Assembly (NCBI GenBank): GCA_964188305.1
Contig: OZ076893.1
Length of the DNA stretch: 64,000 nucleotides
Reading direction: 5' to 3' (one strand)
Source: Podarcis bocagei
Taxonomy: Eukaryota
The notes below the pieces were generated by a model. It ran no database searches, was not told where the DNA came from, and saw only the letters and a program-made list of their open reading frames with translations. Numbering within the stretch: position 1 is the first letter of the stretch; each line of letters opens with the position of its first letter. A program made the position numbers and the translations under genes. Shown one piece after another: positions 2 through 59,294 of the stretch.

Positions 2-3000
2 TTAGGTCCTAAAGAAGATTTATATAGTCAAGTGTCTAAGAAATCCCAGAAAAATGAATTAGAATCTAACCTGAAGCAAAATCTAAATAGACAGTTGCCT
101 AAGCTAAAAGCCAAATCAGACAAAAAACCTCACTTGAAAGCAGAAGAAGGGTTAATGGCTAAAGATCACCCCAAAAATGAAATTGAACAGATTAAAGAAG
201 GTACATGGGACACAGCTAATGTAACAGAACAAACAGCAGGTTGCATAGTTTCATGGAAGCCATTGACTGATACAGGAAGTGGTCCTAAGGCTGAAAAAGA
301 AAAGAAGGTAACTTCTGCCAAATCACACAAATCATCATTGAAACATAAAAAAGTAAAAAAGAATAAAAAACCTGAAAGTGCTTCAGGTAGTAAAGTCCCT
401 GTGTTGGATGAGACTAGAACATTGGATACTTTGAGGGATGCAGCCTTGACAAATGAGATTGCAGAACTTTCTCTTGAAAGTTATGTCCAAAACTGGTTGC
501 AGAACATATTCCCAAATGCTGCAATGCCTGAAAAGCATTTACCTCCCATAAATTCAGATAACAGAACAATGCATCAGTTGTCTGTCAAGTCTTTTTCAGA
601 TAAAGAAAGTCAGTTAGTAGGAAAGAATGTGTGCCTATCAGGGAATAAAAATATTAGTGAAAGTAAACTATCCAATGGTACATTAAATCATCTCAGTGAA
701 CTAGGAACTGTTGAAGAATCAGTTAAAAAACTGTACGAAGGACACATTGGCTGTTTGACAGATGCTGAGGCAAGTTTAATAGAAGAAGCCAAGTATTTAT
801 TACAGTCAGATAACCAGAGCAATAATAAACTATCCATGTGTAATATACATGAAAATGACAAAAAGAATGTTCTGTTAGAAACCAGTGATCAAAGGTACAT
901 TTCTGAAATTGCTGCCCGGGTTAGTCCCAATGGCACCAGTAACATTCTAGGACCTGATATGCAGAAGGATTGTGTCAGTGGTCTGTTGCTGCACCAGCTG
1001 AAATCAACAGTGCTCAGTGCTGAAAAGAACCATGTTGGATGCATTACAGACATTTCTTCTTCCTCCCTTCTTGGAGCTTCTTCCAATCTCCTCCTCGCTT
1101 GGCTCCTTCTACTTAACCTCAAAGAAACTTTGTCCAATATAAATAAAGATGACATGGTACAAACTACCTGTAGCTGTTCAGAAGTATTTACACTCCTGCA
1201 GTATTTGAAACAAGTTGCAATTAAAGAGGAAGCTGAAGACCTGAAGACTGCTGTCTCCAATCTTCAGGACTGCACAGCAAACCATTTAATATTCTCCGGA
1301 ATGCAAATAGAGAAACAGGAACCAACATACCACAAAGAAATTTTTCCTCAAGCTGAAATTAAACATATACCAGTCTTTGAAGAAGGAAAAGTAAACAAGA
1401 ATTTAACTCTTAAGAATAAGTTGAGTTCTGAGGAAGTTATTGATGCAGAAGTGTTAGCAGGAGAATTGGAGAGGTCTAGTGGGGAGGAGGAGGAGGAGGA
1501 GACCTGCAGAACTCCAGTAGAGAATTCAGATCTAAATGATTTGGATGTTCATGATGAAATGCAAAATTTGAACTGCATTAATGCTGACTTGAATAGCTGT
1601 GGCTTGGCTTCAAATGAGGATCTGCCTACAGAAAATGAACAAAGTTCATTTGAACATAGCTCATTTCAAGGCACACAGGAAAAAACCACAGATACATCAT
1701 TTAATAATGAAGAATCAGAGATATCACAAGAACCTAAGTCAAGCACTCACAGCATGACCTCTAATGATAAAGACCACATGTTTGATCTAGAAACTTCAGA
1801 GGTAGATGATAAGGAAGTAAAGGGCACAGAAGATTTAAACTGGACCAACTCTGTGTTGTTAAAGGAAAATTCAAGTGAGTGTCTTACTTCCATTGCTGAT
1901 AATACCACAAATGGTGACATTGTAGAAAATTCTGTACGGGAAGACATGGAGGAAGATGGTACTTGTGAGGAGACTTCAGAACGATTGTCTACACCATCAC
2001 CATTATCTTTTTGTTATGAATCTAAGCAAATTCCAGGAGAAGAGGAACAGGTGTCCCGAGTAAAACTGATAGTAAAGGAACTTGAGGGTGGATCCTACTC
2101 AAATTCTTCTTTGGAATTCAAAAAATGCCTGAAAAGTCCTGCCACTTCTGACTTGTCAGATTATCGACCAGAAACTGATGAAAGTGATTACAATGTTAGG
2201 CATTCCAGTGACTTGACGAATGAAAGTGTAGATGAAGCAATATATGAAAAAGAGTACAACAAAGGGTATGTGAAAAGAACTATTGAGAGACTTTATGGTA
2301 AAGCCGAAGCTTCCTTTAAGTCCCCTTCTAAGCTTGATCCTCCATATTTGACTCAAACACTACAAGGAAATGCTGTAGAAGAACCCTGTCATGATGTAAT
2401 GGAGGGAGCTCCTTTGTTGTGTCAAAAGAATCATACCTGGCTGGATGAATTTGCATCACCTAAAATCCCAGAAGATTTAAACGCAAATAATGACATGTGG
2501 GAAAAAGAAAATGCTACCTTGCCAGCACCACAGTTTAGTCTTAATGGGGAAGAAGCATATTATAATGATGACTGTTCAGTGGAATACACAAACCAGCACT
2601 GCCAATCTAGGGAACACATTGCTGAAGATGAAGGAGTACTGATTGATAAAGGAAAATGGCTTCTTAAGGAGAACCATTTAATAAGGAGGTCACCACCTGA
2701 GAACTCTGGATTGTATGGCAATACAGATACAACATCGGCCGACACGGCATTTGACAATCATAGTGATGAAATCCCATATTCACATTTTGGGAATCTGAAT
2801 CTCCGGCCGCCTCTCAAAGAAATATCATCTTCTGAACTTGAAGACATGGCTAAGCCATATGACAATGGATGCAACTACTTCAACATGCCTCATAACAGTG
2901 ATTCAGATCCGTTTCCTGATACTTTAAGTATACAAAGCAGAAACAACCAGTGTAGTAGCTCCGTGCTTTTTGAGGCAGCATGTAACAGTTCCACGCAATT

Positions 3001-3877
3001 TTATACAGAAGTGAAAAGTAATTCCCCAGCTCTTACTTCTGTAGAATTTAGATTACCAGACAATAAGGTGCATCCTGCAGAACAGTCTTCAAATGATGAG
3101 CCAATTCAAACCCAACCAATAAGCAACACTCATTCAAGCAGGAATAGCCGTGAAGATCAAGACTCGCTGGATAAACTCCATGCTATCTGTGGACAACATT
3201 GTCCAATATTGACAGCCATCATAAAGCCAACTAATGAGGAGATCAGAGGATGTGCTTACCAAAAAGCCTCCGATGTTGAGAACCAAGTGGGGTCACATTT
3301 GTTAACAAATACTCCATATTTCGTATGGCAAGGCAAAAATATAACTGGACTTTACAAATATCACACAGACCTGAAGAACAGCAGCATTAATAACATTGCA
3401 AATAATATTTTTAACAGACTCTATGCTGACAATACTTTAGATTTCATGAATGGCAGTACTTTCAGTTTACTTGTGTCAGCAGCACTGAAAGAAAATCAAG
3501 GTTTAAAGAAATTATATGTCACAGAAAATATTGATGTGGGCACACAGGAGATCAACAGTCATGAAAATAATGCCAGTAGTGATGCATTCAGTGAGATAAC
3601 AGTGGAGCAGAATAATAATTTATCTGTACTGCAGAACTCAAAAGATAAGGGAAACAAAATGGTTGCAGAGAAACCTGCTTCTTCATTAGCAGATGTAACA
3701 GAAAGGTGTAAACATGAAAATTTTCACCATCATGAGGCACTCTTAAATAGTACTGGCTTGAAATTAACTGTAAACTTGGAAGGTGAAAATGCCTTCAGTA
3801 TCAAAGAAGAAACTTCACCTTATGTAAAAGAAGATGAAAGTGACAATGAGTATTCAGACTCCGAAAAAAGTTATTAA
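2..3877 (+). CDS. RP1: RP1 giant coding exon (exon-4 equivalent), 3' part; terminal exon of the canonical short isoform
   Basis: The frame is open from base 2 (the exon starts upstream of the window; the track's GTG start at 32 is not a real start) to TAA at 3875-3877. The protein is low-complexity and S/E/N-rich, with RP1-type motifs: SSNLLLAWLLLLNLK, YVKRTIERLYGK, DEGVLIDKGKWLLKENHL, CNYFNMPHNSDSDPF, CGQHCPIL. Confidence 0.9.
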   Translation, partial: LGPKEDLYSQVSKKSQKNELESNLKQNLNRQLPKLKAKSDKKPHLKAEEGLMAKDHPKNEIEQIKEGTWDTANVTEQTAGCIVSWKPLTDTGSGPKAEKEKKVTSAKSHKSSLKHKKVKKNKKPESASGSKVPVLDETRTLDTLRDAALTNEIAELSLESYVQNWLQNIFPNAAMPEKHLPPINSDNRTMHQLSVKSFSDKESQLVGKNVCLSGNKNISESKLSNGTLNHLSELGTVEESVKKLYEGHIGCLTDAEASLIEEAKYLLQSDNQSNNKLSMCNIHENDKKNVLLETSDQRYISEIAARVSPNGTSNILGPDMQKDCVSGLLLHQLKSTVLSAEKNHVGCITDISSSSLLGASSNLLLAWLLLLNLKETLSNINKDDMVQTTCSCSEVFTLLQYLKQVAIKEEAEDLKTAVSNLQDCTANHLIFSGMQIEKQEPTYHKEIFPQAEIKHIPVFEEGKVNKNLTLKNKLSSEEVIDAEVLAGELERSSGEEEEEETCRTPVENSDLNDLDVHDEMQNLNCINADLNSCGLASNEDLPTENEQSSFEHSSFQGTQEKTTDTSFNNEESEISQEPKSSTHSMTSNDKDHMFDLETSEVDDKEVKGTEDLNWTNSVLLKENSSECLTSIADNTTNGDIVENSVREDMEEDGTCEETSERLSTPSPLSFCYESKQIPGEEEQVSRVKLIVKELEGGSYSNSSLEFKKCLKSPATSDLSDYRPETDESDYNVRHSSDLTNESVDEAIYEKEYNKGYVKRTIERLYGKAEASFKSPSKLDPPYLTQTLQGNAVEEPCHDVMEGAPLLCQKNHTWLDEFASPKIPEDLNANNDMWEKENATLPAPQFSLNGEEAYYNDDCSVEYTNQHCQSREHIAEDEGVLIDKGKWLLKENHLIRRSPPENSGLYGNTDTTSADTAFDNHSDEIPYSHFGNLNLRPPLKEISSSELEDMAKPYDNGCNYFNMPHNSDSDPFPDTLSIQSRNNQCSSSVLFEAACNSSTQFYTEVKSNSPALTSVEFRLPDNKVHPAEQSSNDEPIQTQPISNTHSSRNSREDQDSLDKLHAICGQHCPILTAIIKPTNEEIRGCAYQKASDVENQVGSHLLTNTPYFVWQGKNITGLYKYHTDLKNSSINNIANNIFNRLYADNTLDFMNGSTFSLLVSAALKENQGLKKLYVTENIDVGTQEINSHENNASSDAFSEITVEQNNNLSVLQNSKDKGNKMVAEKPASSLADVTERCKHENFHHHEALLNSTGLKLTVNLEGENAFSIKEETSPYVKEDESDNEYSDSEKSY

Positions 3878-4907
3878 GAATTATATAGCACTGCCTATAT
3901 ATTAAAACAAAACAAAACCACAAATGATAAAGACAGTGAATTTATGCCCTGGTTTGAGGAATACATGTTCCTAATTTCTTATTAATAATTCTTCTGTGAA
4001 AAGGTTTTTTTGTTCTTGTTTGTTTTTCGCACTCTTGTTACATATTTTCCTTAACAAATGCAAAATAACATTACAAAAATTTTGTGCATGAGAAACTATG
4101 GAAATATTAGTTAATAATGTTTTTTTGTGATGGTAGATTAAACTCATGACCCATGTTATTGAACATTAGAAATGCAGCCCATTATGCTAGCATGGACAGG
4201 GAGTAGGACTGATATTGTTTATTTTATTAGAGAGGCCATTTGTGATCATTTTATTTATTGTTATTTTTCTCTAATCTGCAAGTGTAATTAACTTACCTGA
4301 AAAAACTGTTAAGTTTACATTTCTAAATCTTCATAATTATTCTTATCATAGTTTATAATTATAATTTGTCCAGTGAAATACTTTGGAGATCCGTATACAG
4401 AACATTTTAGTTTTACAAAACAGATGTTAAAGATACTTTTTCTAACAAACTGTAAAAACAATATTGTATATTGAATGTATATTGAAATGGGCAACAGAAA
4501 GTATTGCAATTATAGGCAATAATCTTATGTATGATGTCGGTGAGCTTTACTCTTGTGTTCTATACACTGAGAAACTTAGAAAATACACAAAGGCATGATT
4601 CTAAGAAGGGCTAACTGATCTCATTTATGTATGTAACCAGGCCACTCTCTAGTTTTGTTGGGGTTGTTTTTTTTAAAACCAAGTTTGCCCTCTGTCTTAA
4701 TGAATATAAAATCAGACACTAGTTAGTCTTCAATTACAGAGACTACCCTAGAATGGTCAAAAAATGAAAACATCATATACATTACCACTTCTGTTGCATT
4801 TCTACTGGAGATAATCGTGATAGAAACTACTAGTCTAACACTGCAATAGCTAAATGTAGCTAGTGCAATAGAACTTGCTTCATATTTCTGAAAGTCCAAA
4901 AGGCAGC

Positions 4908-4971
<64 letters not shown>

Positions 4972-5406: not shown

Positions 5407-5456
<50 letters not shown>

Positions 5457-6050
5457 GCTCCTGAGCCATTTAAGACTTTATAGGTCAAAACCAGCACTCT
5501 GAATTGGGCCTGGATTGGTGTAATGTGGCTACTGAATTCTGCACCAGCAGAACTTTCTGAACTGTCTTCAGATGCAGCCTCATGTATAATGTATCGCAGT
5601 AATCTAACCTAGAGGTTACCAGAGCCCAGATGAGAGAGGTTATGCTATCCCTAACCAGGCACTCCATGCCACCAAGGCCACCTGAACCTCATCCAACAGC
5701 AGTGGGTCCAGAAGTACTCTCAATCTGTGTACTCACTCCTTTAGAGGGAGTTGTAGCTCCATCAAGATTTTCATCCATCTGATCTAGGGAACCACCCACT
5801 AACAGTGTCTCAGTGTTATCTGGGTGGAGTTTCACTTTATTGGCTCTCATTTGGTCCATTCCTGAGGCAGGAAAATGCTCTAGCATATCTACTGCCATGC
5901 CTGTAGATGTAAAGGTAGAGCTGTGTGTCATCAGCATATACTGTAGCTGACAATATACTCCAAAACTCCTGATGACCCCACTCAGTGGTTCCATGTAGAT
6001 GTTAAACAGCATGGGGGACAAAATCAAACCTTGAGGAAGCCCACACTGAA
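4908..6050 (-). mobile_element. L2-type LINE 3' fragment (degenerate RT) with (AAT)n tail
   Basis: Minus-strand peptides CGLPQGLILSPMLFNIYMEPL and ALVTSRLDYC...VQNSVA; ATT microsatellite tail at 4908-4971. Confidence 0.8.
5296..5456 (+). mobile_element. Short LINE 3'-tail fragment with (ATT)n tail, nested in the L2 copy in the opposite orientation
   Basis: Interrupts the host sequence gaggtactgtggt|...cctgagccatttaag and ends in AATAAA followed by (ATT)n. Confidence 0.55.
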
Positions 6051-7096
6051 GACTATGTGTTTTTTCTACAGATACTTGGCTGTTATACATTGTTTCAAAG
6101 CAATAGCTATCATTACCCTTGTATTTGTGTTTCTATGATAATGAATCTGTATTATGAACAATAAAGTAAGCTAAAAGAACAGCCCTTTGTTATTGGAGAA
6201 AAATGGAAGATTGCTGAACAGCCTGACCTCAATCTGTACCTTGTATAATTAATGAAAGCATAATGGATGACAACACCAGCCTTGGAGATATTACATATAT
6301 GTTGCACTAATTTTTGAAACCAGTTTTTAAAGGAATAATTATTGTAACACAATACAGCATTTATTTCATCTATCCTCACAATCCCTGAATCAGGCCTTCA
6401 CAATAACATTTCCAGTTTATGGATAGAAAACTGACTCTGAGGGAAGGTGATTCATCCAGAGACCAACCTGAGGGTTCGTGATTGAACATGTATTTGAAGT
6501 TGCATGTTCAACCCAATGGGCTGTAAATGTTGCTGCCAATGCACAAATGGAATGGTTTGTCAGTCACACAACAGGACCTCACTTTCTTCTCATGTCCCTG
6601 CATTACCTTGCACCCCCTCAAAACCTGCTCTTTAGGGTTGGGGGGATCCTCTGAAAAAGATTGGGGTGTATGTGTCGAATAATAGAAAGCTAACTCCTGT
6701 TGCACAAGCAGAGGTCCACTCATATAACATTGAATTCTGTCCAACATCAACCAGACTGTGCTGGTTGTATTAGATCAATGTAAGAATGCTGGGTCCATAG
6801 AACCAATAAGAAAAGTCTATAATGCAAATTAATTTATGATTGTGTAATCATTTATTAACATTTCAGTGCATTTTATAATAAGTAACTTAAGTAGTGCTAA
6901 AACAAACAAGGAATTGTTTTTGTTTATATTATTTTAGATTTTTTAAGCTAAACGTGTCTCAAAAATTGGGCACACTACAGTTCCCACCACAGATGAAAAT
7001 TGCTTTTTTGAATGGCCTGTATAGTTACTGAAGCTCGTAAGTGGTAAGAGCCTAGGATGGAGACCTTTGCATAGGGCTCCAACTTGAAGTACCATG

Positions 7097-7265
7097 CAGT
7101 GGCATAGCGTGGATTGTCAGCACCCGGGGCAAGGCAAGCAATTTGCGCCCCCTAACCCGTGGATTTGCGCCCCCTAACCCGTGGATTTGCGCCCCCTAAC
7201 CCTAACCCCCAGATGTTGCGCCCGGTGCGGCCGGCCCCCCCTGCACCCCCCACGCTACGCCACTG
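7097..7265. mobile_element. hAT-type MITE with telomere-like internal repeats (copy 1)
   Basis: TIRs CAGTGGCATAGCGTGG / CCACGCTACGCCACTG; perfect 8-bp TSD GTACCATG (7089-7096, 7266-7273). Confidence 0.88.
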
Positions 7266-9013
7266 GTACCATGAAGTACAACAAACAAACAAAAAAGGTG
7301 TATTTTTATCTTGTGAACTGCCCTGAGATCTTAAGATGAAGGGTGGTATATAAGTCAAACAAACAAACAAATTCCATCATGATAATTTTATACAAAAAAC
7401 ATAGTCATGAAGGCTGTAAGTCCCCTGATAGAATGTGAATAGCTGGAAAGTAGAGAAAGGCAAGATGGTAGCTGACTGGACTGTACTTCAGTGGTTGGAA
7501 CTGGAAAGAGGTCATTTAAGCAGCACAGCCCAACCACTCTGTTTTCCATAGCTGGAATGGAGCCTACGGTACAAAGGTGAGTCATGTGCTGCACACACTT
7601 TTTGCCTCTGGATTTGTCCACTACTGGCATGTGGTCCTGGAAGGTCACTCGGGAGGGGAAATGGCCCCTGGGTAGGAAAATGTTTCCTACTCTTCTTTTA
7701 CTCTATCATGAACACATGCATTAACTAATGAGATTAACCTAAAGGTTGCCATTAATATCTGGAAATTCATTATTAGGGCACAAACTATTTGGACTCCTTA
7801 GGTGTAATAACCAATGTGGTACTTCTGCTATACATATAGTATTTGTGTTATAGAAGTTTCTAAATATAAATATTGCAGCAAGTGGTTAATGGGTAGTGAC
7901 TAAATATTGAAAGCATTACACTGTTTCATTTGAGGATGCAGAGAATGATTTCTGCTTGACAGAATTGCAGGCCATTATGCACTGATGTTCAGTTCCCTTT
8001 CACAGGTGCTATTGCCCCAAAGAACCCATTGTCATTTATCTCTTAACTGCTGATTCTTAAAACCAGTTTCTTCTCTTAATCTCGTGGATATTGCTAAATT
8101 GGATTAAGCAAATGAGCATAATATTCAATTACAACTAGTGAAGAGAATGATTTAATAAAAGCAAAGCTGTACAGGTCTTATTGGTGCTATATTATTAACA
8201 TTATAAGTCATTATCAAGGCACAAGTACAGGGACAGAATGAGAAAAATTAAATGGCTGCCCGTTGAGTGTTCCTGTTCATTTCATGGATAATTCCCGTAA
8301 GGAGAAAATCACTGAGGAAAATCTGTGCTAAAACTGAATGTGATGGAAGACAGCCTCTGAATCTGGCTGTAATAATTGTAAATCTGTGTGACAAAGCAAT
8401 CTGTGCTGGAATTGGGACAATGGCTATGAGCCATAATGGCTACGCTCAGCCTGCACTGTTGGAGGCAGTATGTTTCTGAATAACACTTGCTGGGAATCAC
8501 AGTGCTGTTGCTCTCTGGTCCAGCATGTGAGTTTCCCATATGCATCTGTTTGGCCACTGTGAGAACATGAGACCAGACGAGATGGGCCTTTCTCCTGATA
8601 CGACAGGCCTCTTCTCATGTTCTTATCAACTTCCTTTGGAATTGGGATCCAAAAGGCAATCAAAATCGACCTTGGCGAAGAAAAGAAACTATAAGGCATG
8701 AGGAAGACTGTCTGAGGTTCACGGAAGCATGAGCGTGTTTGTGTGAATGTGTATCATTGAAGCCCTATTGCAGTAGTGGACAGTGTAGTGGAGTAGACCT
8801 CTTACCTGACCTGACCTCCTAGGTGAGTCAGGTAAGCACCTTTGCCCTACGATGCCATCTGCTACTGCCTAGTTGAAACTAGAGTGTGGAAAATGGGTAT
8901 TTCAGGTACAACTTCCAGTAATTTGTGATTATTTTAAGGAAAGGCAATTCTTACCTGGTGAGAGGCACATCCTAATTCCCATTAATTATAGATTTCTTTA
9001 TATGTTTCTTTAG

Positions 9014-9177
9014 CTAGGAAGTGGAAGGTAACAGTTTTTACCAGTGACCTACCATCTGCCAGCACCAGCTCACAAGTTTATATTGTACTATATGGGGATC
9101 AAAATAATTCAGGAGCTGTCTTTCTATATGGAGAGGAGAAAAAGGTGTTTGAAAGAGGAAATGAAGATACATTCATT
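9014..9177 (+). CDS. RP1: RP1 long-isoform exon A, PLAT/LH2 domain 1 N-terminal part (RKWKVTVFTSDLPSASTSSQVYIVLYGDQNNSG...FERGNEDTFI)
   Basis: ttctttag acceptor, gtaagt donor, 164 bp, phase 1 to 0. Classic PLAT motifs W-K-V-T-V-x-T, V-Y-I-x-L-Y-G and F-E-R-G-x-x-D-x-F. Confidence 0.88.
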
Positions 9178-9216
9178 GTAAGTTAATATAATGAAATACT
9201 GTTTTTTTATAAGGAT

Positions 9217-9322
9217 TGTTATTGTTGTTTAGTCGTTTAGTCATGTCCAACTCTTCGTGACCCCATGGACCAGAGCATGCCAGGCACTTCTGTCTTCCAC
9301 TGTCTCCCGCAGTTTGGTCAAA
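9217..9322 (-). mobile_element. BovB/RTE LINE 5'-truncated 3' end
   Basis: (CAA)n-type tail with tagtcgtttagtcatgtccaactcttcgtgaccccatggaccagagc; 12-bp TSD TTTTATAAGGAT (9205-9216, 9323-9334). Confidence 0.75.
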
Positions 9323-11260
9323 TTTTATAAGGATAGCACATGATTAAAAATAAAGAGTTAACTTTTTTTTTTGGTTAAGCAAAGTTTCCATTTCTTTATT
9401 GTTAAGTCCAGAACACAGTTCAGTCATTCTCCAGTTGTGTGGAGTGGAAAAGACTATAACAAAAAGTTATGTACGCTTCTAAAGTAGCTCTTTGTGGTTT
9501 TAGGGCTGCCATTCTTTTAGGGCTGCACCACATAATCCTGTTTACTGAATTATATTATTTGCCACCGTCACATGGCATTTTGAATTTGCAAAAACTGCTT
9601 TCATTACAGATCAGTTGTAATGGATGTTCTAAACATTTTGTCATGGGGAAGCAGTTCTCAATCCATTGGGTGGTGTTCAATGACTGCATGCTGTCAGCAC
9701 AAGATTTCTGCTTCCACGATGTGACTTTTCCATCCCTCTCATTCCACTACATGCCCTGAACCCTCTCGGTTCTGTTCCAGAGGGTTGGGAAAACCCCTAG
9801 AACACATATGGGGGTGTAGGGGGAGGAGATGGGGAGAGCAATATGTTGCATGAACAGAAATCTTTGCACGGACAAAATGTTTATGTAGTGCTACATTGCA
9901 TACAACCCATGACTTGAATTTAAGGTGGGTAAACAATAATAATGGGGTTTTCCTGATGGAGCTCACTTGTATTCCCAGGGTCAATTCATGACTTCCAGCA
10001 TATCAGCTGAGGCCAAGATGACTCTATGTTTTCCAGTGATACTTATTAAAGGTGAACTCAGTCCAGTTGGGTTTTGCAAAACCATGAGAAATGTAGCCTA
10101 AGATAGATGGGTGCAGTTGAAATCCATGGTTGCCACCATCAGAAATGGCCAGTCCCCAGAGGGAGCAGTAGAAATGAAAAATGAGTGAAGTATGCATCGG
10201 CCTGTATGATCTGTCCTAGCTTGGCTTATAGTACCCAGGGGAGGTTGGATTGAAGCAGTGCATTTACTGGAAGGATAGGGTCACATCCTGAAGAGCAAAG
10301 TCAAATCTTGAAAGGCAGAATCACATTTAATAAGCTGTACAAGATAATAACTGCCAAGGTAAAGCACAGTATGTTAGAACCCTGGACAGATCATTATGGC
10401 AAGTACAGGCAGAAACTGCTACCTCAGAATTATTCTGAGGCCTTCTGAAGGCCAACTGGTCTGGATCTACTTTTAACATCTCCCCCTATGAGGAGCTGTC
10501 TGTTTCTTAAAGGATCATTTCATAATTCTGCAGCTGCAGCCTCCAATGGCATGTGGAAGGTGAAGAATGGATCAGGGGGTACACTGAGTCTGAGAAGTCA
10601 GGGAAAGCAACATCCTCTGGCCTAGAAGGTACTTGAGTAAAGGGCAAAGGCTTCCCAGACAATGCTCCTTCTCCTCTGATTTTCCCCTGGGCTGGGAAGA
10701 AGAGTTGAGGCCAGAGAACAAGAGATTGTATTCCATTGGCTGGCTAGCCTTCTGCTTTTTTGGTCCATCTGAGGTAACCTCAACCCATATAATTCTCAGT
10801 TCATCACATTTCCCTGTAGAGGTTGGCTTCACGCTTCAAGGACTACAAGTATATAAAAATAAACAGCGATGTTCATATAAGTAATGAAGTCATTCCAGAC
10901 TGTAAATTGATAAGCTGGCTAATGTCCTAAGATGAAACACTCTATTTATCACACCATTCTAAGCAAGGATTTGCTGCTTCAATATGTTGTAGGCTGCATT
11001 GATGCCCTAAGATTGAACCCATTGACGCAAAAATCCTAAACACATTTACTTCATTTGAATTCTATTTCAAGTAAATTTACTCAGTTTTGCAGACTCACAG
11101 CTGGACCTACTTATTCAGTCCTCCTTGAACTAAATGCTTTACAAAGATGAAATAGTATTCTGAAGTAATATGTGAAACATATTGAACCAAAGTTACTGGA
11201 GCAGTTTTATGTTCAAAGAAGCTAGATGAACTGCTGTTTTGTGTGTGGTTATTTTAACAG

Positions 11261-11347
11261 ATACAAATGGAAGACCTAGGAGAGCTCTACAAAATACGGA
11301 TAGGGCACAATAACTCTGGAGAAACCCCTGCCTGGCACTGCAAAGCG
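11261..11347 (+). CDS. RP1: RP1 long-isoform exon B, PLAT1 middle (IQMEDLGELYKIRIGHNNSGETPAWHCKA)
   Basis: ttttaacag acceptor, gtgagc donor, 87 bp, phase 0 to 0. Contains the LGxLxKIRIGHxNxGxxPxW PLAT motif. Confidence 0.9.
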
Positions 11348-11560
11348 GTGAGCTATGTCCATATCTTAAAATCAATCATTCTTTCTGAAGATCTCGGCAA
11401 ATGACACTTTTGCTGCTTCGCCAAAACCTTAGTCATGCACATACTATATGTTCACATGTTGCATAGCTACACCATTGGAATAGTACATTGTTGCTGCTGA
11501 AGAAAATGTTATCCAGTAAACAAGATTTTGGTAAGCCACAGACTCATGGTTAATGATATA

Positions 11561-12086
11561 CAGTGGTACCTCGGGTTACAGACGCTTCCGGTTACAGACT
11601 CCGCTAACCTAGAAATAGTACCTCGGGTTAAGAACTTTGCTTCAGGATGAGAACAGAAATCACATGGCGGCGGCAAAGTACCATATTTTTCGCTCTATAA
11701 CACGCATCCGACCATAACACGCACATAGTTTTTAGAGGAGGAAAATCCGTAGGCATGCCACCCGTAGGCATTTCCTCCATAACACGCACAGACATTTCCC
11801 CTTACTTTCTAGGAGGAAAAAAAGTGAGCGTTATGGTGAAAAAAATACAGTACCTCAGGATAAGTACTTAATTCATTCCGGAGGTCCGTTCTTAACCTGA
11901 AACTGTTCTTAACCTGAAGCACCACTTTAGCTAATAGGGCCTGCTGCTGCCACTGCGCCACCGCTGCACGATTTCTGTTCTCATCCTGAAGCAAAGTTCT
12001 TAACCCGAGGTACTATTTCTGGGTTAGCGGAGCCTGTAACCTGAAGCGTATGTAACCTGAAGCGTATGTAACCCGAGGTACCACTG
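11561..12086. mobile_element. Tc1/mariner (Tigger-like) MITE
   Basis: TIRs CAGTGGTACCTCGGGTTACA / TGTAACCCGAGGTACCACTG, TA TSD, long palindromic arms. Confidence 0.88.
11681..11850. mobile_element. Small Tc1/mariner (pogo/Tc2-like) MITE nested in the Tigger-like MITE
   Basis: Termini CCATATTTTTCGCTCTATAAC ... GTTATGGTGAAAAAAATACAG, TA on both sides; a near-identical free copy is at 54967-55135. Confidence 0.82.
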
Positions 12087-12817
12087 TATACATATTTAAT
12101 CCCTATGAAAATTCTTCAGCATTTTACTGTTAATTTCTATCTAGTTACACATCTTTGTATGCTGTTTTGAGTAATGCAAACATATTTACAAGCAATTTCA
12201 CTCAATGCATTTTAGTATGTCATTTTCACTAATATATTAATTTTTATCTTCACTTCACCCTAATATATGCATTTTTTAAAACATTGGCTTGACAACTGCA
12301 AAATTTGATAAATGCAAAATTTGAAGGATGGTTGTGTTTTAGTTGTCATCAAAGTGTAAATTTGATAGATTCAGACATGAACTGAATTTGTTGTATTGTG
12401 TCTGCAGTTGGGAGACTGTTCTGGTCAAGTAAGCTCTTGGTGTGATTCAGAATACCAAAAAACCAGAGAAACATTTTGTGCATTTCTGGGGGGTTTAGTC
12501 AGGTTCCATCCTTGAATATACTCATCTTAGACTTCTAAAGGGCACAGACACAATTATCATGTATTCTGAGGGGGGAAAGGTAGATTAGAGAGATTTGTAT
12601 GGTTTACACTTACAGTACAAATTCAGGAAACCTCTGACATGGGTTTTGGTTGGAAAACTCATTCTCTATATTTACAATGCAGCATAAAAAGTGACCCTCA
12701 CATACTCAGGGGTCTGTTCCAGTAAAGACTGTAACAGCATTTGTTCATTTTTGAATAGTATTAGTTCATTTTTGCAAAGATACCACAATAATGTAGACTT
12801 GATTGTTTGCATTTCAG

Positions 12818-12947
12818 CTGCATTTGCAGAATCTTGTGACAGGGGAGCAGTTTGATTTCCCTGTAGATAGGTGGCTGGCACAACAGGATGATGGCGAAAT
12901 ATGTCAAGAACTTCCTGTTTTACATCTGGGTCAGCCCATTCTTCCAG
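12818..12947 (+). CDS. RP1: RP1 long-isoform exon C, PLAT1 C-terminal part (LHLQNLVTGEQFDFPVDRWLAQQDDGEICQELPV...)
   Basis: atttcag acceptor, gtaagg donor, 130 bp, phase 0 to 1. Contains the FPxxRWL...DG motif. Confidence 0.9.
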
Positions 12948-13084
12948 GTAAGGAATACAAAAATAGCAGGAGTTATGGGGACTCTTCCCGTCCCTATAAC
13001 TGCAATCAATAGGAAACTGCTTAGACATGGAAAATACTTAATGGGGAATGATAAATAGAAATATATGACCATTAAATACATGTT

Positions 13085-16865: not shown

Positions 16866-17017
16866 TGGCAGTGTACGAGGTGCATGTGGTAACAGGTGAT
16901 CTGTGGAATGCTGGAACAGAAGCTGATATCTACATTGCTGTCTATGGAGAAAAGGGTGACACTGGTTCCCGACAGCTCCGTAGGTCAAAGAAACCTAGGA
17001 AATGTGTAAAAGGACAA
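16866..17017 (+). CDS. RP1: RP1 long-isoform exon D, PLAT2 N-terminal part (VAVYEVHVVTGDLWNAGTEADIYIAVYGEKGDTGSRQL...)
   Basis: ctgtcag acceptor, gtgagt donor, 152 bp, phase 1 to 0. Contains the YxVxVxTG..AGT..IYI..YG.KGDTG motif. Confidence 0.9.
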
Positions 17018-17705: not shown

Positions 17706-17784
17706 ACTGATATATTTTTACTTGAAGCTGTGCACCTTGGAAATCTGCATAGAATTGTTATAGGACACAATGGACTTGGCTCAG
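17706..17784 (+). CDS. RP1: RP1 long-isoform exon E, PLAT2 (TDIFLLEAVHLGNLHRIVIGHNGLGS)
   Basis: ttgcag acceptor, gtcaga donor, 79 bp, phase 0 to 1. Confidence 0.88.
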
Positions 17785-18702: not shown

Positions 18703-18778
18703 GAAATGGTTGGTTTCTGGAGAAAATTGTAGTCAAGGATTTTATTACCAGCTCGGATTATAACTTTGCGTGCCACAG
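18703..18778 (+). CDS. RP1: RP1 long-isoform exon F, PLAT2 (GNGWFLEKIVVKDFITSSDYNFACH)
   Basis: ctcctag acceptor, gtttgt donor, 76 bp, phase 1 to 2. Contains the GWFLxxIVV motif. Confidence 0.88.
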
Positions 18779-19892: not shown

Positions 19893-19894
<2 letters not shown>

Positions 19895-19940
<46 letters not shown>

Positions 19941-20529: not shown

Positions 20530-20606
20530 GTGGCTAGATCAAGGAGAAGATGATGGCAAAATTGTTAGAGAACTGTATGTCACTCTTGATGACACATTTG
20601 CTGGGA
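20530..20606 (+). CDS. RP1: RP1 long-isoform exon G, PLAT2 end (RWLDQGEDDGKIVRELYV...)
   Basis: ccccaaag acceptor, gtaagt donor, 77 bp, phase 2 to 1. Contains the RWLD..EDDG.I.REL motif. Confidence 0.88.
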
Positions 20607-20849: not shown

Positions 20850-22143
20850 CCGTATTTTTCGCCCTATAAGACGCACCGGCCCATAGGACGCACCTAGTTT
20901 TCAGGGGGGGGGGAAATCAAGGAAAAAAATATGATTCCCCCCCGCAGCTCTGGGAGCAGCGGACAGGCTGCACGCAGCCTGTGCGCTACTCCAAGACCTT
21001 CTCCCTGCTTTTGCGGGAGGTGGCGGAATTCCCCCACCTCCCGCAAAAGCCCACAGGAGCCCCACGTAACTCCTGCGGGCTTTTCGACTAGGAGGGAGAA
21101 GGGACTGAAAGGGCCAGTCAGTCCCTTCTCCCTCCTTGGGGAAAAGCCCCCAAGAGCCGCTTGCTCTTTAAAGGGTGCGTGGCTCCTGCAGGCTTTTCTA
21201 GGAGGTGGGGGAATTCCCCCCCTCGTAGAAAAGCCAGCAGAAGCCGCGGAGCCCCTTTAAAGAGCGCACGGCTTTTGCCTGCTTTTGCGGGAGGTGGGGG
21301 AATTTCCCCATCTCCCGCAAAAGCCCAAAGGAGGGTTGGAGAGCAGCGGCAAGGCGTCGCGCGCCTTCCTGCTGCCCCCCATACTCTGGGGCTGGCGATG
21401 GGGGAAGCGCTGCTTTCCCCACCGCCAGCCTCAAACCCGGGTTGGAGAGTAGCGGCAAGGCGTCGCGCGCCTTCCTGCTGCCCCCCATCCTCTGGGGCTG
21501 GCGATGGGGGAAGCGCTGCTTTCCCCACCGCCAGCCTCAAACCCGGGTTGGAGAGTAGCAGCAAGGCGTCGCGCGCCTTCCTGCTGCCCCCCATCCTCTG
21601 GGGCTGGCAATGGGGGAAGCGCTGCTTTCTCCACCGCCAGCCTCAAACCCGGGTTGGAGAGCAGCGGCAAGGCGTCGCGCGCCTTCCTGCTGCCCCCCAT
21701 CCTCTGGGGCTGGCGATGGGGGAAGCGCTGCTTTCCCCACCGCCAGCCTCAAACCCGGGTTGGAGAGTAGCAGCAAGGCGTTGCGCGCCTTCCTGCTGCC
21801 CCCCATCCTCTGGGGCTGGCGATGGGGGAAGCGCTGCTTTCCCCACCGCCAGCCTCAAACCCGGGTTGGAGAGTAGCAGCAAGGCGTCGCGCGCCTTCCT
21901 GCTGCCCCCCATCCTCTGGGGCTGGCGATGGGGGAAGCGCTGCTTTCCTCCACCGCCAGCCTCAAACAGCAGACTCTCCTGGCTTCAGCGGAAGCAACGC
22001 GAAGCCTCCGGAGCGCAGGCTTCGGAGGCTTCGTGTTGCTATCGCTGAAGCCAAGGAGTCTGCATTCGCCCCATAAGACGCACCCACATTTCCCCTTCAT
22101 TTTTGGAGGGGAAAAAGTGCGTCTTATAGGGCGAAAAATACGG
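20850..22143. mobile_element. 1.3-kb non-autonomous Tc1/mariner (pogo/Tc2-like) DNA transposon
   Basis: Perfect 27-bp TIRs CCGTATTTTTCGCCCTATAAGACGCAC, TA on both sides, GC/CpG-rich interior, no transposase. Confidence 0.9.
21333..21967. repeat. 106-bp GC-rich tandem repeat, 6 copies
   Basis: Units start at 21333, 21439, 21545, 21651, 21757 and 21863 and differ by only a few substitutions. Confidence 0.95.
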
Positions 22144-22267: not shown

Positions 22268-22299
22268 GACAAGAACTGGAAATCAAAAGAGCAGAAATG
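22268..22299 (+). CDS. RP1: RP1 long-isoform exon H, 32-bp linker exon (RQELEIKRAEM)
   Basis: tttctgtag acceptor, gtaaaa donor. Phase 1 to 0 exactly bridges exons G and I. Confidence 0.75.
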
Positions 22300-22653: not shown

Positions 22654-22783
22654 TGGGCAGCTGAAAAGTGGAAATTTCAGAAAGGCAATACACTTCAGTT
22701 TTACAACAAGGTATCCCATGGATTCATATGCCTGTCTCCTGATGGAACTGTTCATGCCCATGGTGACAAGAAAGATAAATACG
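22654..22783 (+). CDS. RP1: RP1 long-isoform exon I, FGF-like beta-trefoil domain 1, first part (WAAEKWKFQKGNTLQFYNKVSHGFICLSPDGTVHAHGDKKDKY)
   Basis: ctttccag acceptor, gtaact donor, 130 bp, phase 0 to 1. Confidence 0.85.
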
Positions 22784-22985: not shown

Positions 22986-23176
22986 CATTGGCGTAGCGTG
23001 GGGGGTGCAGGGGGGCCCGGCCGCACCGGGCGCAACATCTGGGGGTTAGGGTTAGGGGGCGGAAATCCACGGGTTAGGGGGCACAAATCCATGGGTTAGG
23101 GGGCGCAAATCCACGGGTTAGGGGGCGCAAATTACTTGCCTTGCCCCGGGTGCTGACAACCCACACTACGCCACTG
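22986..23176. mobile_element. hAT-type MITE with telomere-like repeats (copy 2, opposite orientation to 7097-7265)
   Basis: Same TIR family as copy 1; perfect 8-bp TSD CGGGCTGT (22978-22985, 23177-23184). Confidence 0.88.
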
Positions 23177-23739: not shown

Positions 23740-23843
23740 GTCTTTTCGATGTGGCCATCAAAAAAGGAAACACATGTGTGTTTAAAAGTCACCCAGTGCC
23801 ACACCTAGCCCTTGGCTTTGCTCATGGTTCAGTTGCTGGAATG
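23740..23843 (+). CDS. RP1: RP1 long-isoform exon J, FGF-like domain 1, middle (GLFDVAIKKGNTCVFKSHPVPHLALGFAHGSVAGM)
   Basis: Poly-T then aaag acceptor, gtatga donor, 104 bp, phase 1 to 0. Confidence 0.85.
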
Positions 23844-25394: not shown

Positions 25395-25568
25395 AACAAT
25401 GGTGACGTCCACTGTGAGCTGCAGGTTCACGTTCAACCAAATCGTTGCACAATTCTGGAATCTGCCCAGAACCCAGGGCAAATGGTGACTTTCAGTCTCC
25501 AAGGCACTGTAGCTGATGATGCCATAAGCTATGCAGGACTGACAAAGGAGTTTGTAGTTCATGTTAAG
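25395..25568 (+). CDS. RP1: RP1 long-isoform exon K, FGF-like domain 1, last part (NNGDVHCELQVHVQPNRCTILESAQNPGQMVTFSLQG...KEFVVHVK)
   Basis: cttattag acceptor, gtaaga donor, 174 bp, phase 0 to 0. Confidence 0.85.
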
Positions 25569-26546: not shown

Positions 26547-26759
26547 GGAGTGTTCCACAACAGTGCCATAATTTTGCTCACTACTAGCTACTGCCAGTCT
26601 CTCTGCCTGAGGCCTGATGGGAGCTGCAGTGGAGCAGGAAATCAATCTGATGACTCTTACTGGAGAGTACATAAAATCAGCTCTGGGGTTTGCATGTTTG
26701 AAAGTGTAAAAAACCCAAGAATGTATCTGAGGATCAAGGATGGGCAGTGTAATGGAACG
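26547..26759 (+). CDS. RP1: RP1 long-isoform exon L, FGF-like domain 2, first part (GVFHNSAIILLTTSYCQSLCLRPDGSCSGAG...GVCMFESVKNPRMYLRIKDGQCNGT)
   Basis: atttctag acceptor, gtaagg donor, 213 bp, phase 0 to 0. Confidence 0.87.
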
Positions 26760-28726: not shown

Positions 28727-28904
28727 GGCACAGGAGATGTGGACTGTCATTTTAAAGTGGAAAAGAATTTAGAAAGTGGGTCTGTAAGCCTAGAATCTGC
28801 ACGAAACAGAGGGATATATGTAGGTCTCCTGCCTAATGGTCAGACCAAACCAGTTGTTCACACTGGAGAAAGCAACATTTGGTTTTACCCGCAAGTTGTC
28901 AAAT
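28727..28904 (+). CDS. RP1: RP1 long-isoform exon M, FGF-like domain 2, last part (GTGDVDCHFKVEKNLESGSVSLESARNRGIYVGLLPNGQTKP...WFYPQVVK)
   Basis: tttcttacag acceptor, gtatgt donor, 178 bp, phase 0 to 1. Confidence 0.87.
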
Positions 28905-31522: not shown

Positions 31523-31654
31523 TTGGAAGAGAGAAGCCTATGGGAACATCTGCAACGCCTGCTCAGCAGAAAGAAGTGATCAGAGAATCCAAACACCAAC
31601 AAGCAGGAACTCAAAATTTAGTGTCCTACAGATGTCCAGATTCTCCTCCCTCAA
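31523..31654 (+). CDS. RP1: RP1 long-isoform exon N, linker (FGREKPMGTSATPAQQKEVIRESK...DSPPS)
   Basis: aatttcag acceptor, gtaagc donor, 132 bp, phase 1 to 1, open frame. Confidence 0.75.
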
Positions 31655-36408: not shown

Positions 36409-36611
36409 AGGATATGAGAAATATCCAAGATGGCGAGTCGCCTTTTCCTTCAGCTGATAAATGGAAAGTGTCAGTGCTGACAGGAAATGCAGGAACCCGA
36501 GCAAATGTCACTCTCTGGATATATGGAGACAAAGGGGTTGCTGGACCAATAGCTCTTGGCAAGGACAACAGAGAACAGCTGTTTCTACCCAGGATGGAAG
36601 ATTCATTCCAG
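36409..36611 (+). CDS. RP1: RP1 long-isoform exon O, PLAT3 N-terminal part (…DKWKVSVLTGNAGTRANVTLWIYGDKGVAGPI...FLPRMEDSFQ)
   Basis: cttcacag acceptor (an alternative in-frame acceptor lies at 36453), gtagct donor, phase 1 to 0, PLAT motifs present. Confidence 0.85.
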
Positions 36612-38978: not shown

Positions 38979-38982
<4 letters not shown>

Positions 38983-39017: not shown

Positions 39018-39019
<2 letters not shown>

Positions 39020-43682: not shown

Positions 43683-43769
43683 GTTGAAATAAAACATATT
43701 GGAAACATCTACAAAATCAGAATAGGGCATGATGGAACAAGTAAACAGCCAGAATGGATGTTGGAAAAG
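43683..43769 (+). CDS. RP1: RP1 long-isoform exon P, PLAT3 middle (VEIKHIGNIYKIRIGHDGTSKQPEWMLEK)
   Basis: aattcag acceptor, gtaaga donor, 87 bp like exon B, phase 0 to 0. Confidence 0.9.
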
Positions 43770-46165: not shown

Positions 46166-46298
46166 GTAATCCTACAACATCTAAAGAGTGGGAAAATTCT
46201 GAATTTTCCAGCAAACAAATGGTTGTCAAGGAGCAGAGGGAATGGAGATACTCTGTGTGAACTTCCAGTAGTGGAAAAAGGAAGAAGCCTTTATTCAT
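46166..46298 (+). CDS. RP1: RP1 long-isoform exon Q, PLAT3 end (VILQHLKSGKILNFPANKWLSRSRGNGDTLCELPV...)
   Basis: ctttcatag acceptor, gtaata donor, 133 bp, phase 0 to 1. Confidence 0.87.
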
Positions 46299-46901: not shown

Positions 46902-47053
46902 CCGTGAGTTACCAGGTTTATGTGTACACGGGGCACTTGGAAGATGCTGAAACAGATTCTTCTGTTTATTTATGCATATATGGAGAAAGAGGAGATTCTG
47001 GTTTGAGACTTCTTCACAAATCTGACAAGGTGGTGAAATTTCAGAGAGGAATG
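46902..47053 (+). CDS. RP1: RP1 long-isoform exon R, PLAT4 N-terminal part (SVSYQVYVYTGHLEDAETDSSVYLCIYGERGDSGLRLL...FQRGM)
   Basis: cttctctag acceptor, gtaagc donor, 152 bp like exon D, phase 1 to 0. Confidence 0.88.
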
Positions 47054-48629
47054 GTAAGCCTGCTGAAGAGAATCAGTATACTCCCATTTCAGATCAACTG
47101 AAAGTGGTTTCAATACACAGCATACTTAGCACTAGTTCTGAAGGAAATTGAGTCAAATTTTGCACCACTTTCTTTACTAACACTTAGTAAACTATAGTAC
47201 CTTTGCATACGTTTTCTGAGAGAGACTATCAGGAACCAGACAAAGCTCAGGAAAAGCAGGATCCTATAAATAACTGATAAAAGAAACTGAAGAAAAATAG
47301 ACAAGAGAAAAATAAGGCAGCAGGAAAGACTTTTGGGATGGTTGTGAAAGGTGAAGAAAAGGTAGACTCTTAACCTGTCAACTGCCAAGATATTTCTTGC
47401 TGCCAAAATGCATGACTTTGAATAACCTTTAAGAATTTCAGCTAACTGTTCTTTTGTCTGGTTTTATATTTAGAAGCCTAACGGTTTTTTATCTTTTAGT
47501 TTTGCATGAGCAATATGTGCATATATAGTAATCAGTCCTTCACAATATCTACCACTGAAGTAATCAGCCGGTTCATATATTTGATTAGCTAGGGCCCTTT
47601 CCTGCTTGAAGTTCAAAATCTCTATCAGGGTGCTGAGTTCTTTCATTTGCCTTCCTAATGGTTCTCTTCAAGTCAAATGTACTTGTTAGTGTTTAGATGA
47701 TGTGTGATGCATTTTGCTTCCTTAAAACAGAGCTCCCAAATGGTGCTGCTCACTCCCCTGCTAGGGCCAAAACTTTAAAAAGCCTTTCAGACCCAATTTT
47801 CTTGTCTTCATTTACTCACCTTCCGCCATACATGGTGCCACCTGCCCCTGGCTCATGGCTGGACCAGCTCTGGAGTCCAGACCCCAACAACAAGACTCTT
47901 TTCACTTCATGTGCCCTTCCTAGCAATGGATCCCTTGGCTGCTGTACTGTTTTTCTCCCTTCTGTGAAGGGAGCAGACAGATGTGGTTCATCAGTCTGAA
48001 ACATCTCTGATACAAAGCATCCTTGGAAAGGGAAAAATGCCTGGATAGTTCCAGATATGTATGCACCATCTGGAGTTTCATTGGAAATTGAGTTTCTGAT
48101 ACTGCAGTTACCTTCTTTGTGCTTCTTGTGACCTACATGGCTCTGCTGCTGCTTAGGATGGGCTTATAATTCAAGTTTAACAAAGCCATTGTATGATAGG
48201 GCAAATTAGCAGTACTTAGTGAGATAAAAGGTAGAGCATTCTATAATTCAAAGGGCTGTACCAGAATGAGATTTGTTTGCTGAAACCATATATTTATTTA
48301 CCATATTAAAAGGTGACATAATGATAGTCATTTCAAAAAACTTAATATTTCTGAAATGGTCTGTTGTGTTTTGCATTGCTCCTGCAAGGGTGTGTTGCCC
48401 AAGCTTCCCATAAATTAAGGGCTGCTGTATGATAATTGCATGTGTGTCACATGCAAATATTTCATTATCAATGTTAAAAGCTTTGTAGGACTTATGGAAC
48501 AATTCCTATCCTGTGCAACATGTTCACTTGAAGAAATTATCCCAGTTAGACTAATGCTACGTATGGAAATAACAAAACTTACTTCATTTTCTTTATTTCA
48601 TTTTGTTTTTTCTCTTTTCCGACTCTCAG

Positions 48630-48688
48630 GTGGCTGCCATTTACCTCCCAAGGCACAGTTCATTCAGAAATAGAACTCTCTGCTCAAG
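48630..48688 (+). CDS. RP1: RP1 long-isoform exon S, PLAT4 end (RWLPFTSQGTVHSEIELSAQ)
   Basis: Long pyrimidine tract with ctcag acceptor, gtaaat donor, 59 bp, phase 2 to 1. Paralogous to exon G (G|TGG CTx start). Confidence 0.72.
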
Positions 48689-49600: not shown

Positions 49601-49645
49601 AAATGCAAATAAATCATCAGCTGAAAATGCAAGAGGAAGAAAATG
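49601..49645 (+). CDS. RP1: RP1 long-isoform exon T, linker (EMQINHQLKMQEEEN)
   Basis: tttttggcag acceptor, gtaaat donor, 45 bp, phase 1 to 1. Confidence 0.72.
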
Positions 49646-52094: not shown

Positions 52095-52258
52095 GAGAAG
52101 ATTGGAAAATCACTGTAGTCACTGGAGGTTTTGAAACAGCTGGCACAACAGCAACTGTGTCCCTGTATGTTTATGGAGAAAATAAGGCTTCTGGTCCTCT
52201 TATTCTGGGATCTGGGAAACACCAGCTGTTTAATCCCCACAGTACAGATACATTCAAG
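52095..52258 (+). CDS. RP1: RP1 long-isoform exon U, PLAT5 N-terminal part (GEDWKITVVTGGFETAGTTATVSLYVYGENKASGP...DTFK)
   Basis: cctgcag acceptor, gtacaa donor, 164 bp like exon A, phase 1 to 0. Confidence 0.88.
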
Positions 52259-56149: not shown

Positions 56150-56500
56150 CTCACTCAAACAATAGCCTGACCAGTGTAGTCCATGCATTGGTAACCTCAA
56201 GGTGGATTGCTACAATGAGCTCTATGCAGGGCTGCCCTTGGGCCTGGTTTGGAAGTGGCCAGGGTGCTTATGACTTGACAACATGTGGTACCATTGTTAA
56301 CATCTGAACTGGCTGCCCATCCACTACCAAACCAGGTTAAAGGTCCCCTTATTAATCCCTGAACAACTTAGATCCAGGGTACCTTAGGGACTGCTTAAAG
56401 CCTTACATCCCAGCTTAATCACTGAGGTCATCTGCAAGAGTTTTGTTGGTTGTCCCCCAAGTTGGCAAAGCACATTTGACATCAACATGAAACAGCTCCC
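56150..56500 (+). mobile_element. Degenerate L2-type LINE fragment
   Basis: catgcattggtaacctcaaggtggattgctacaatgagctctatgcagggctgccc resembles the ALVTSRLDYCNALYAGLP coding segment. Confidence 0.55.
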
Positions 56501-58263: not shown

Positions 58264-58484
58264 CAGTGGTACCTCTGGTTATGAATGCTTCTGGTTACGA
58301 ACACTTCAGGTTACAATCTCTGCTAACCCGGAAGTAGCTGCTCCTGGTTGTGAACTTTGCCCCAGGATGCGAACAGAAATCACGTGATGGAGGCATGTGC
58401 ACAGTGGGAACCCCCATTAATGAAAGCATGTCTCAGGATAAGAATGGTTTCAGTTTAAGATTGGACCTCCGGAACAAATTAAGT
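58264..58484. mobile_element. Truncated Tigger-like MITE
   Basis: TA-CAGTGGTACCTCTGGTTA left end; related to 11561-12086. Confidence 0.7.
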
Positions 58485-58712
58485 CAGCAGTTTGAATCCC
58501 TGCGATGGGGTGAGCTCGAAAGCAAATCAAAGTGCAAGTAGATAAATAGGTGGGAAGGTAAACAGCGTTTCCGTGCACTACTCTGGTTTCTCCAGAAGCG
58601 GCTTAGTCATGCTGGCCACATGACCCAGAAAAACAGCAGACAAATGTCGGCTCCCTCGGCCAGTAAAGTGAGATGAGTCGTTCGTGACTAGACTAAACTA
58701 CCTTTACCTTTA
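58485..58712 (+). mobile_element. Sauria SINE fragment
   Basis: gatggggtgagctc...aagtgcaagtagataaatagg...gaaggtaaac..cgtttcc...gctggccacatgacc...ggctccctcggccagtaaag, ending in an (ACCTTT)n tail. Confidence 0.75.
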
Positions 58713-59077
58713 AGGTGCTACTAGAAGGAATTTTTTTATTGTTTCGACTACGGCAGACCAACACGGCTACCTACCTGTAACTAAAGTTTACAACGTGTTT
58801 CCCTGAAATGCTTCTTTGATGTGTCTAGATCGAGCCTAGGAGAGCCTCCTAAGCAGATCTTAAAGTGCAAGCAGGAAGGTACTGGTGCAGACAGTCAAAT
58901 AAATGGCTTTTATTTTATATATCACTCATGGATGACTTACTGCACTTAGGGGGGTGGGAATGATTGGTATACCTCTTTGGTAATCCGTACTAATTAGGGA
59001 AGTTTTGTGATGGGCAAATGAATTATAATGGGCCAATGAACTATAATAATAGCTTTTGCTATTTTATTATTTTGCAG

Positions 59078-59294
59078 ATTAATCTAAAAGATGTTGGAGA
59101 GCTGTATAAAATCCGGATTGGCCATGACAATAGTGGACCAGATCCTAGTTGGTACATTGATGAGATTAGAATGAACTCACCATTGGACCAAGAATTTTTT
59201 TTACCTGTCAACTGCTGGCTATCTGAAAGCCAAGGTGATGGAGAAACATGGAGAGAAATAGCAATAGGGAGGCCTAACAAAGCACTTCTACCAT
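59078..59294 (+). CDS. RP1: RP1 long-isoform exon V, PLAT5 remainder (INLKDVGELYKIRIGHDNSGPDPSWYIDEI...LPVNCWLSESQGDGETWREI...)
   Basis: ttttgcag acceptor, gtgagt donor, 217 bp, phase 0 to 1. The gene continues beyond the window. Confidence 0.9.

Follow-up and report, generated by a model that had tools for sequence, protein, structure and literature searches.

One donor, two probable partners: the giant terminal exon of RP1 and a downstream chain of PLAT and beta-trefoil exons in the lizard Podarcis bocagei

RP1 is commonly regarded as a four-exon photoreceptor gene. Its canonical product is a protein of the photoreceptor axoneme that is mutated in retinitis pigmentosa, and its giant exon carries human retinitis pigmentosa mutations. 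The DNA considered here, a stretch of 64,000 nucleotides (nt) from contig OZ076893.1 of Podarcis bocagei (assembly GCA_964188305.1), referred to as the window, opens within that giant exon. It raises the question to which gene the long series of exons belongs that follows the giant exon on the same strand and encodes PLAT and FGF-like domains. Our answer, to which we give a probability of roughly 0.8, is that the window lies inside one large RP1 gene, in which the phase-1 donor of doublecortin (DCX) exon 3 has two alternative partners: the giant exon nearby, or the first exon of the distant PLAT chain.

The near partner can be recognized at the 5' end of the window, where a plus-strand frame that enters from beyond the window edge can be read from position 2 to a stop at 3875-3877. 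The resulting feature (2-3877, 1291 codons and the stop) contains a low-complexity sequence that corresponds to the canonical C-terminus. A word search matched it to RP1 (oxygen-regulated protein 1) of lizards, turtles and birds with E = 0. Sequence identity reaches 98.0% with Podarcis muralis, against 96.6% with P. raffonei, 92.2% with Zootoca vivipara and 46-61% with turtles, agamids and varanids. A Pfam search of the 1291 residues found no domain. By these matches the frame is the 3' part of the giant terminal exon of RP1, homologous to RP1 exon 4. Two ATTAAA motifs, at 3901 and 4137, follow the stop on the plus strand and form candidate polyadenylation (poly(A)) signals (3901-4142), recognized by pattern only.

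The far partner and the exons behind it were positioned by tblastn with orthologous proteins and then trimmed at splice sites. The guides were the Bombina bombina protein (P0048), further orthologues and lastly the P. muralis RefSeq protein XP_028592785.2 (P0324). Ab initio splice scoring as sole exon finder had yielded too many candidates and was given up in favour of these proteins. In this way 22 plus-strand exons, named A to V, were recovered between 9014 and 59294, all of them flanked by AG (acceptor) and GT (donor) and free of in-frame stops; the minus strand gave no comparable exon matches. Identities and domain calls refer to single exons or, as a proxy, to the orthologue of P. muralis; the exon-by-exon identity to XP_028592785.2 amounts to 900 of 918 residues (98.0%). 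The 18 exons A to R (9014-47053) sum to 2303 nt with matched phases throughout. Exons S to V are in phase with one another and out of phase with exon R. Exon A (9014-9177) encodes the first third of a PLAT domain, is identical to the P. muralis protein in all 54 residues and lacks an ATG. It opens with CT, two nucleotides that complete a codon, and therefore needs a donor that leaves one nucleotide over (intron phase 1). An earlier note on this DNA had described a giant exon with a stop at 3877 and 22 further exons on the same strand, an uninterrupted frame of 2303 nt over exons A to R, and an exon A without start codon that depends on an upstream phase-1 donor; all of this was borne out.

Such a donor is indeed available. 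The DCX exons lie upstream of the window, and the locus around the giant exon in P. raffonei (L001) was used in their place. There, DCX exons are found at 3-608 and 7066-7242, and 2.9 kb separate the latter from the giant exon. Exon 3 ends in AGA AAA A/GTAAGT (the slash marking the splice site), with one base left over and hence an intron of phase 1. The acceptor of the giant exon reads cagatag/AC and that of exon A reads tttag/CT, the latter being identical in the window. Both acceptors are of phase 1, and both therefore fit the exon 3 donor. Moreover, XP_028592785.2 reads EGRK-T-RKWKV at the corresponding point, the join of exon 3 to exon A (window position 9014). The proposal in the earlier note that the DCX exons splice either to the giant exon or, skipping it, to exon A is thus supported by the phases in P. 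raffonei and by the junction in the P. muralis model.

The annotation of the two relatives agrees with a single gene. In P. raffonei and P. muralis one gene spans the region (157.6 kb in P. muralis) and has a DCX, PLAT and FGF product of 2810/2811 amino acids (aa), and the giant exon is annotated as a nested, single-exon 'RP1-like' model of 1841 aa. The N-terminus of this RefSeq model is in fact intron 3, read through from an upstream ATG (10001-10190 in the P. raffonei locus). The nested 'RP1-like' model is an annotation artefact, which results from splitting two isoforms into two genes. The same naming is found in current sauropsid RefSeq entries in general, where the PLAT chain carries the name RP1 and the giant exon is the nested 'RP1-like'.

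The proposed mechanism is the choice of an alternative last exon. Splicing of the exon 3 donor to the giant exon, which brings a stop (3875-3877) and presumably a poly(A) site of its own, would give the canonical, photoreceptor-type RP1, i.e. two DCX domains followed by a low-complexity tail of about 1800 aa. Splicing to exon A at 9014, with the giant exon skipped, would give a protein of the order DCX-DCX-PLAT-PLAT-trefoil-trefoil-PLATn, of 2811 aa in P. muralis. Splicing to the terminal exon in intron 3 and polyadenylation after it would then compete with distal splicing. Both splices would be used in P. bocagei, and the poly(A) competition would operate here as well. DCX domains bind microtubules, and PLAT repeats, those of LOXHD1 among them, attach to membranes or to membrane proteins. 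By analogy, the long form is predicted to be cytoplasmic, with its DCX domains on microtubules and its PLAT repeats on membranes or membrane proteins, and it probably resides in cilia.

Several observations weigh against this reading, the first of which come from read data. Read depth was examined over 7000-12999 in three contig runs guessed to be RNA and in one raw RNA-Seq run. Interspersed repeats at 7000-7400, 9200-9400 and 11400-12200 reached very high depth in all four runs with many chimeric joints, and the tables of joints and loose ends for this region listed only those repeats. Outside the repeats, only the bins of exon B (3.0-4.0) and exon C (3.7-4.9) had depth in each of the three contig runs, and these two are probably expressed as exons. 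For the bin of exon A the depth was zero in the three contig runs, and the raw run contributed the equivalent of about two reads. No read of the four runs carried the junction of exon 3 and exon A, within a region that is dominated by repeats and with exon 3 itself lying outside the window. Furthermore, the proteins that support the DCX-led chain are mostly computed gene models, and models without DCX exist as well. Isoform X2 of Ascaphus starts with the three residues MES and continues with exon A, and several bird models, named 'LOXHD1-like', have their start at exon B or at a methionine inside exon L. In Lacerta agilis there is a 'LOXHD1-like' model of 2534 aa.

Taken together, these data could be read as a separate gene: the PLAT and trefoil exons would mainly or only form a unit without DCX, with its own promoter, located either past the giant exon or within the intron that separates exons A and B, and the joins of the DCX exons to exon A would be artefacts of the models. 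The DCX-less models and the presence of contigs from three runs on exons B and C, and not on the longer exon A, are what such a unit would leave behind. We nevertheless consider it quite unlikely. Exon A has no ATG and requires a phase-1 donor, which exon 3 supplies, and collinear, full-length DCX and PLAT models are found in more than 100 species, including invertebrates whose models have no giant exon. In intron A, around a contig at 9614-9883, neither a CpG island nor an open frame leading from an ATG to a donor was found. Gaps in contig coverage carry no proof, and an internal promoter could coexist with the DCX-led form.

A second way to depart from one gene with two alternative ends is to deny that the giant exon is only terminal. 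An internal phase-1 GT in the giant exon, situated after 3782, would then be spliced to exon A and yield a single fusion protein of approximately 4000 aa, with the DCX domains first, the giant-exon tail next and the PLAT chain last. The window does contain AAG/GTGAAA at 3782, inside the giant exon and in the phase that exon A needs, which would permit a fusion of the giant exon to the PLAT chain, and fusion models of this kind, mostly older ones, are available for ostrich, tinamou, penguin, coelacanth, bowfin and catshark. However, the position of the junction within the giant exon varies among these species, as expected of bridging by gene finders, and the newer annotations of birds, turtles and lizards keep the two forms apart. 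In addition, the donor at 3782 is weak (2.4 bits on a crude matrix) and the giant exon retains its own stop and its acidic tail. The fusion is therefore regarded as highly improbable.

A further point against the alternative use of both partners in this species concerns the integrity of the chain itself. The long frame is broken after exon R in the assembly, and a direct splice from exon R to exon S meets a stop in exon U. Exon R (46902-47053) holds the start of the fourth PLAT domain and ends on a full codon, whereas exon S (48630-48688), with the end of that domain, needs two carried bases. The interval between them (47054-48629) is expected to hold 155 nt, encoding 51 aa, that are present in five other lacertids, and by likeness to exons E and F these 155 nt would constitute two exons. 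The 51 residues are nearly invariant in P. muralis, P. raffonei, P. lilfordi, Zootoca and Lacerta (VD.FEIQAVSLG...YWYCEKVVIRE...IFNCE). Neither tblastn up to E 50 nor fuzzy matching recovered them in any of the six frames of the window. A stretch at 47769-47920 resembles the missing sequence weakly, lacks usable splice sites or phase, and was rejected as a candidate exon.

A real deletion of both exons, with a long isoform that is truncated or decaying in P. bocagei, would account for the loss of so conserved a piece and for the shifted frame. Exons S to V, however, are otherwise intact. Their splice sites and reading frames are preserved and their identity to P. muralis is 93-100%, which makes decay less likely. 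The window has no runs of N, and a gap in the assembly may have been closed silently. Decay seems less likely than a collapse in the assembly or a deletion that is recent or polymorphic, and a long form that is failing in this species is to our judgment unlikely.

The domain content of the chain is clearest in whole proteins. Pfam searches of open frames chosen by eye in the window found only two PLAT pieces. Exon V (59078-59294) by itself matches PLAT/LH2 (PF01477) with 27.7 bits, above the gathering cut-off of 23, and exon R matches PLAT with E 2e-4. A profile-free search of 1.8 billion representative proteins with exon V (59078-59293) also returned multi-PLAT proteins. The Bombina 'oxygen-regulated protein 1' (1381 aa), which is collinear with 9019-59260 of the window, contains two DCX, six PLAT and two FGF matches. 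In the P. muralis protein the segments that match exons A-C, D-G, O-Q, R-S and U-V each score 60-72 bits as PLAT. The architecture DCX-DCX-(PLAT)2-(FGF-like)2-(PLAT)n that the earlier note had predicted is what Pfam finds in this protein.

More specifically, residues 1-272 of XP_028592785.2 comprise the two DCX domains and are encoded upstream of the window. The first PLAT domain (residues 273-399) is formed by exon A, exon B (11261-11347, its middle part) and exon C (12818-12947, its end); the contigs of the three runs mentioned above cover exons B and C. The second (residues 400-527) starts in exon D (16866-17017), continues in exons E (17706-17784) and F (18703-18778) and ends in exon G (20530-20606). 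The 32-nt micro-exon H (22268-22299) encodes the linker RQELEIKRAEM.

The first FGF-like trefoil (residues 539-674) occupies exon I (22654-22783), the 104-nt central exon J (23740-23843), which is entered in phase 1 and left in phase 0, and exon K (25395-25568). Exon K is identical to the P. muralis protein in 51 of 58 residues, and these 58 residues account for 7 of the 18 amino-acid differences between the window's exons and that protein, far above any other exon. The second trefoil (residues 675-805) consists of exon L (26547-26759) and exon M (28727-28904).

Residues 806-989 comprise a linker, encoded by exon N (31523-31654) and the beginning of exon O (36409-36611), and the third PLAT domain, which starts in exon O, has its middle in exon P (43683-43769) and ends in exon Q (46166-46298). 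For exon O two in-phase acceptors are available, 36409 and 36454, with 45 nt between them. The P. muralis model uses the former, and the latter would drop 15 residues of the linker. The fourth PLAT domain (residues 990-1111) comprises exons R and S. The fifth (residues 1112-1260) is led by the 45-nt linker exon T (49601-49645), which is skipped in one P. lilfordi model (SAQ/GEDWK) and is probably a cassette exon, and it is encoded by exon U (52095-52258) and exon V, which leaves one carried base. The gene extends beyond the window, and residues 1261-2811 of the P. muralis protein hold at least seven further PLAT domains.

The term 'FGF-like' deserves some qualification. In the lizard protein the two stretches score 17.8 and 22.9 bits against an FGF cut-off of 24, and as a claim of Pfam membership in the lizard the term appears marginal; the complete Bombina protein reaches 54.9 bits for FGF (PF00167) across two stretches. 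An AlphaFold2 prediction for P. muralis residues 539-805, made with 38 orthologues, consists of two all-beta lobes with a predicted local distance difference test (pLDDT) score of 91.5. The best Foldseek matches of this pair are tandem beta-trefoil proteins, e.g. HA33 and fascin, with E of about 1e-12. As a description of the predicted fold, a beta-trefoil, the term is sound. The chain resembles the FGF family and tandem beta-trefoil proteins (fascin, HA33) in its two consecutive beta-trefoils and in the 104-nt central exon that is entered in phase 1 and left in phase 0. It differs in that the trefoils are embedded in a DCX-led protein that is predicted to be cytoplasmic, and there is no signal peptide context.

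A similar comparison can be made with LOXHD1, a stereocilia protein that consists of a chain of PLAT domains. Both have a long series of PLAT repeats with a similar split-exon structure, and many of the long RP1 models have been named 'LOXHD1-like' automatically. However, the identity to LOXHD1 is 32-36% over about 46% of the query, and the precomputed Pfam lists of LOXHD1 contain neither DCX nor FGF. Orthology of the chain to LOXHD1 was ruled out by this value as compared to 98% for the RP1 models, and the two are separate families.

The long form is by no means confined to lacertids. The earlier note had stated that PLAT-containing RP1 transcripts are annotated in some vertebrates. Annotated they are, and the extent was understated, for the form is far more widespread: its architecture has been modelled in well over 100 vertebrates, and collinear proteins are found in invertebrates as well. 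Forms of approximately 1380 aa with DCX, PLAT and FGF, under names such as 'oxygen-regulated protein 1 isoform X2', are found in macaque, lemur, horse, squirrel, platypus, opossum, birds, gecko, tuatara, frogs, gar, bichir and sharks. Forms of 2800-2830 aa occur in frogs, turtles, alligator, birds, lizards, snakes, marsupials and sturgeon, and longer relatives in lamprey, amphioxus, annelids, molluscs, a brachiopod, nemerteans and echinoderms. The order DCX, PLAT1, PLAT2, trefoil 1, trefoil 2, PLAT is constant in all of them, with PLAT1 starting at residue 266-333, and the invertebrate models show no giant exon. Since the domain order is collinear from vertebrates to invertebrates, the form with PLAT and trefoil domains looks like the older one, the ancestral bilaterian RP1 protein, and the giant exon like an alternative terminal exon of vertebrate type, placed within intron 3. 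One may go a step further and tentatively suppose, at slightly less than even odds, that the original bilaterian RP1 was DCX-PLAT2-trefoil2-PLATn, that the giant exon was a later vertebrate addition in intron 3, and that the ancient form may be the RP1 of extra-ocular motile cilia.

The two ends of the gene also differ in the rate at which they change. The PLAT-chain exons are 97.3% identical to Zootoca, versus 92.2% for the giant exon, and the latter has a ratio of nonsynonymous to synonymous substitution rates (dN/dS) of 0.43 in comparison to P. raffonei. From P. raffonei, exons A-C diverge by 1.3% and intron A by 4.3%. Judged from these comparisons, the PLAT chain is under stronger constraint than the giant exon. 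The canonical protein has exons 1-3 and the phase-1 donor in common with the long form, and differs in a C-terminus that is wholly distinct, of low complexity, free of Pfam domains and faster evolving.

The long isoform is already known at the level of annotation (RefSeq and Ensembl), the same genus included, and the finding is nothing new in kind. The window contains the same gene, the same exons and the same DCX exon 3 junction as the long RP1 models (XP_028592785.2 and the mammalian 'isoform X2' of approximately 1380 aa). It differs from them in lacking the two central exons of the fourth PLAT domain, and P. bocagei is not among the five lacertids that have models. Our searches of the literature found no functional study of the RP1 isoform with PLAT and trefoil domains. 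A modest interest derives from the antiquity of the form, its stronger conservation and the absence of such a study from the literature searched.

In two recent reports the subject is touched upon. A figure of a 2026 clinical paper (PMC13657128) places two PLAT domains (264-381 and 392-510) and one FGF domain (544-578) on human RP1. As far as this drawing goes, it indicates that the long form is present in the domain databases used by its authors, because it places PLAT and FGF domains at 264-578. In a 2026 preprint (PMC13082021), RP1 is reported from airway multiciliated cells, as a microtubule-associated protein. Neither of the two names the isoform.

If RP1 is organized as we propose, the canonical protein would be one branch of a larger and older gene, the other branch of which is more strongly conserved. 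This bears on the reading of variants in exons 2-3, which are common to both forms, and on reports of RP1 in airway cilia. It also bears on domain cartoons: in lizards, the residue numbers given for PLAT and FGF in the drawing of PMC13657128 would belong only to the alternative isoform. Should the ancient form indeed be the RP1 of extra-ocular cilia, null alleles in exons 2-3 and alleles of the giant exon would be expected to differ in their extra-ocular effects.

Finally, the introns contain several repeated elements. A minus-strand open frame at 5692-6090, between the giant exon and exon A, is a reverse-transcriptase fragment (Pfam RVT_1, E 3e-6, under the cut-off) and represents a remnant of a long interspersed element (LINE). 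A 22-nt unit at 7141-7202 recurs in inverted orientation at 23049-23132. The intron between exons G and H contains a GC-rich minisatellite (21333-21967) of six copies of a 106-nt unit that match for 97%, and this array yields several long, spurious open frames on both strands, such as the one at 21161-22048.

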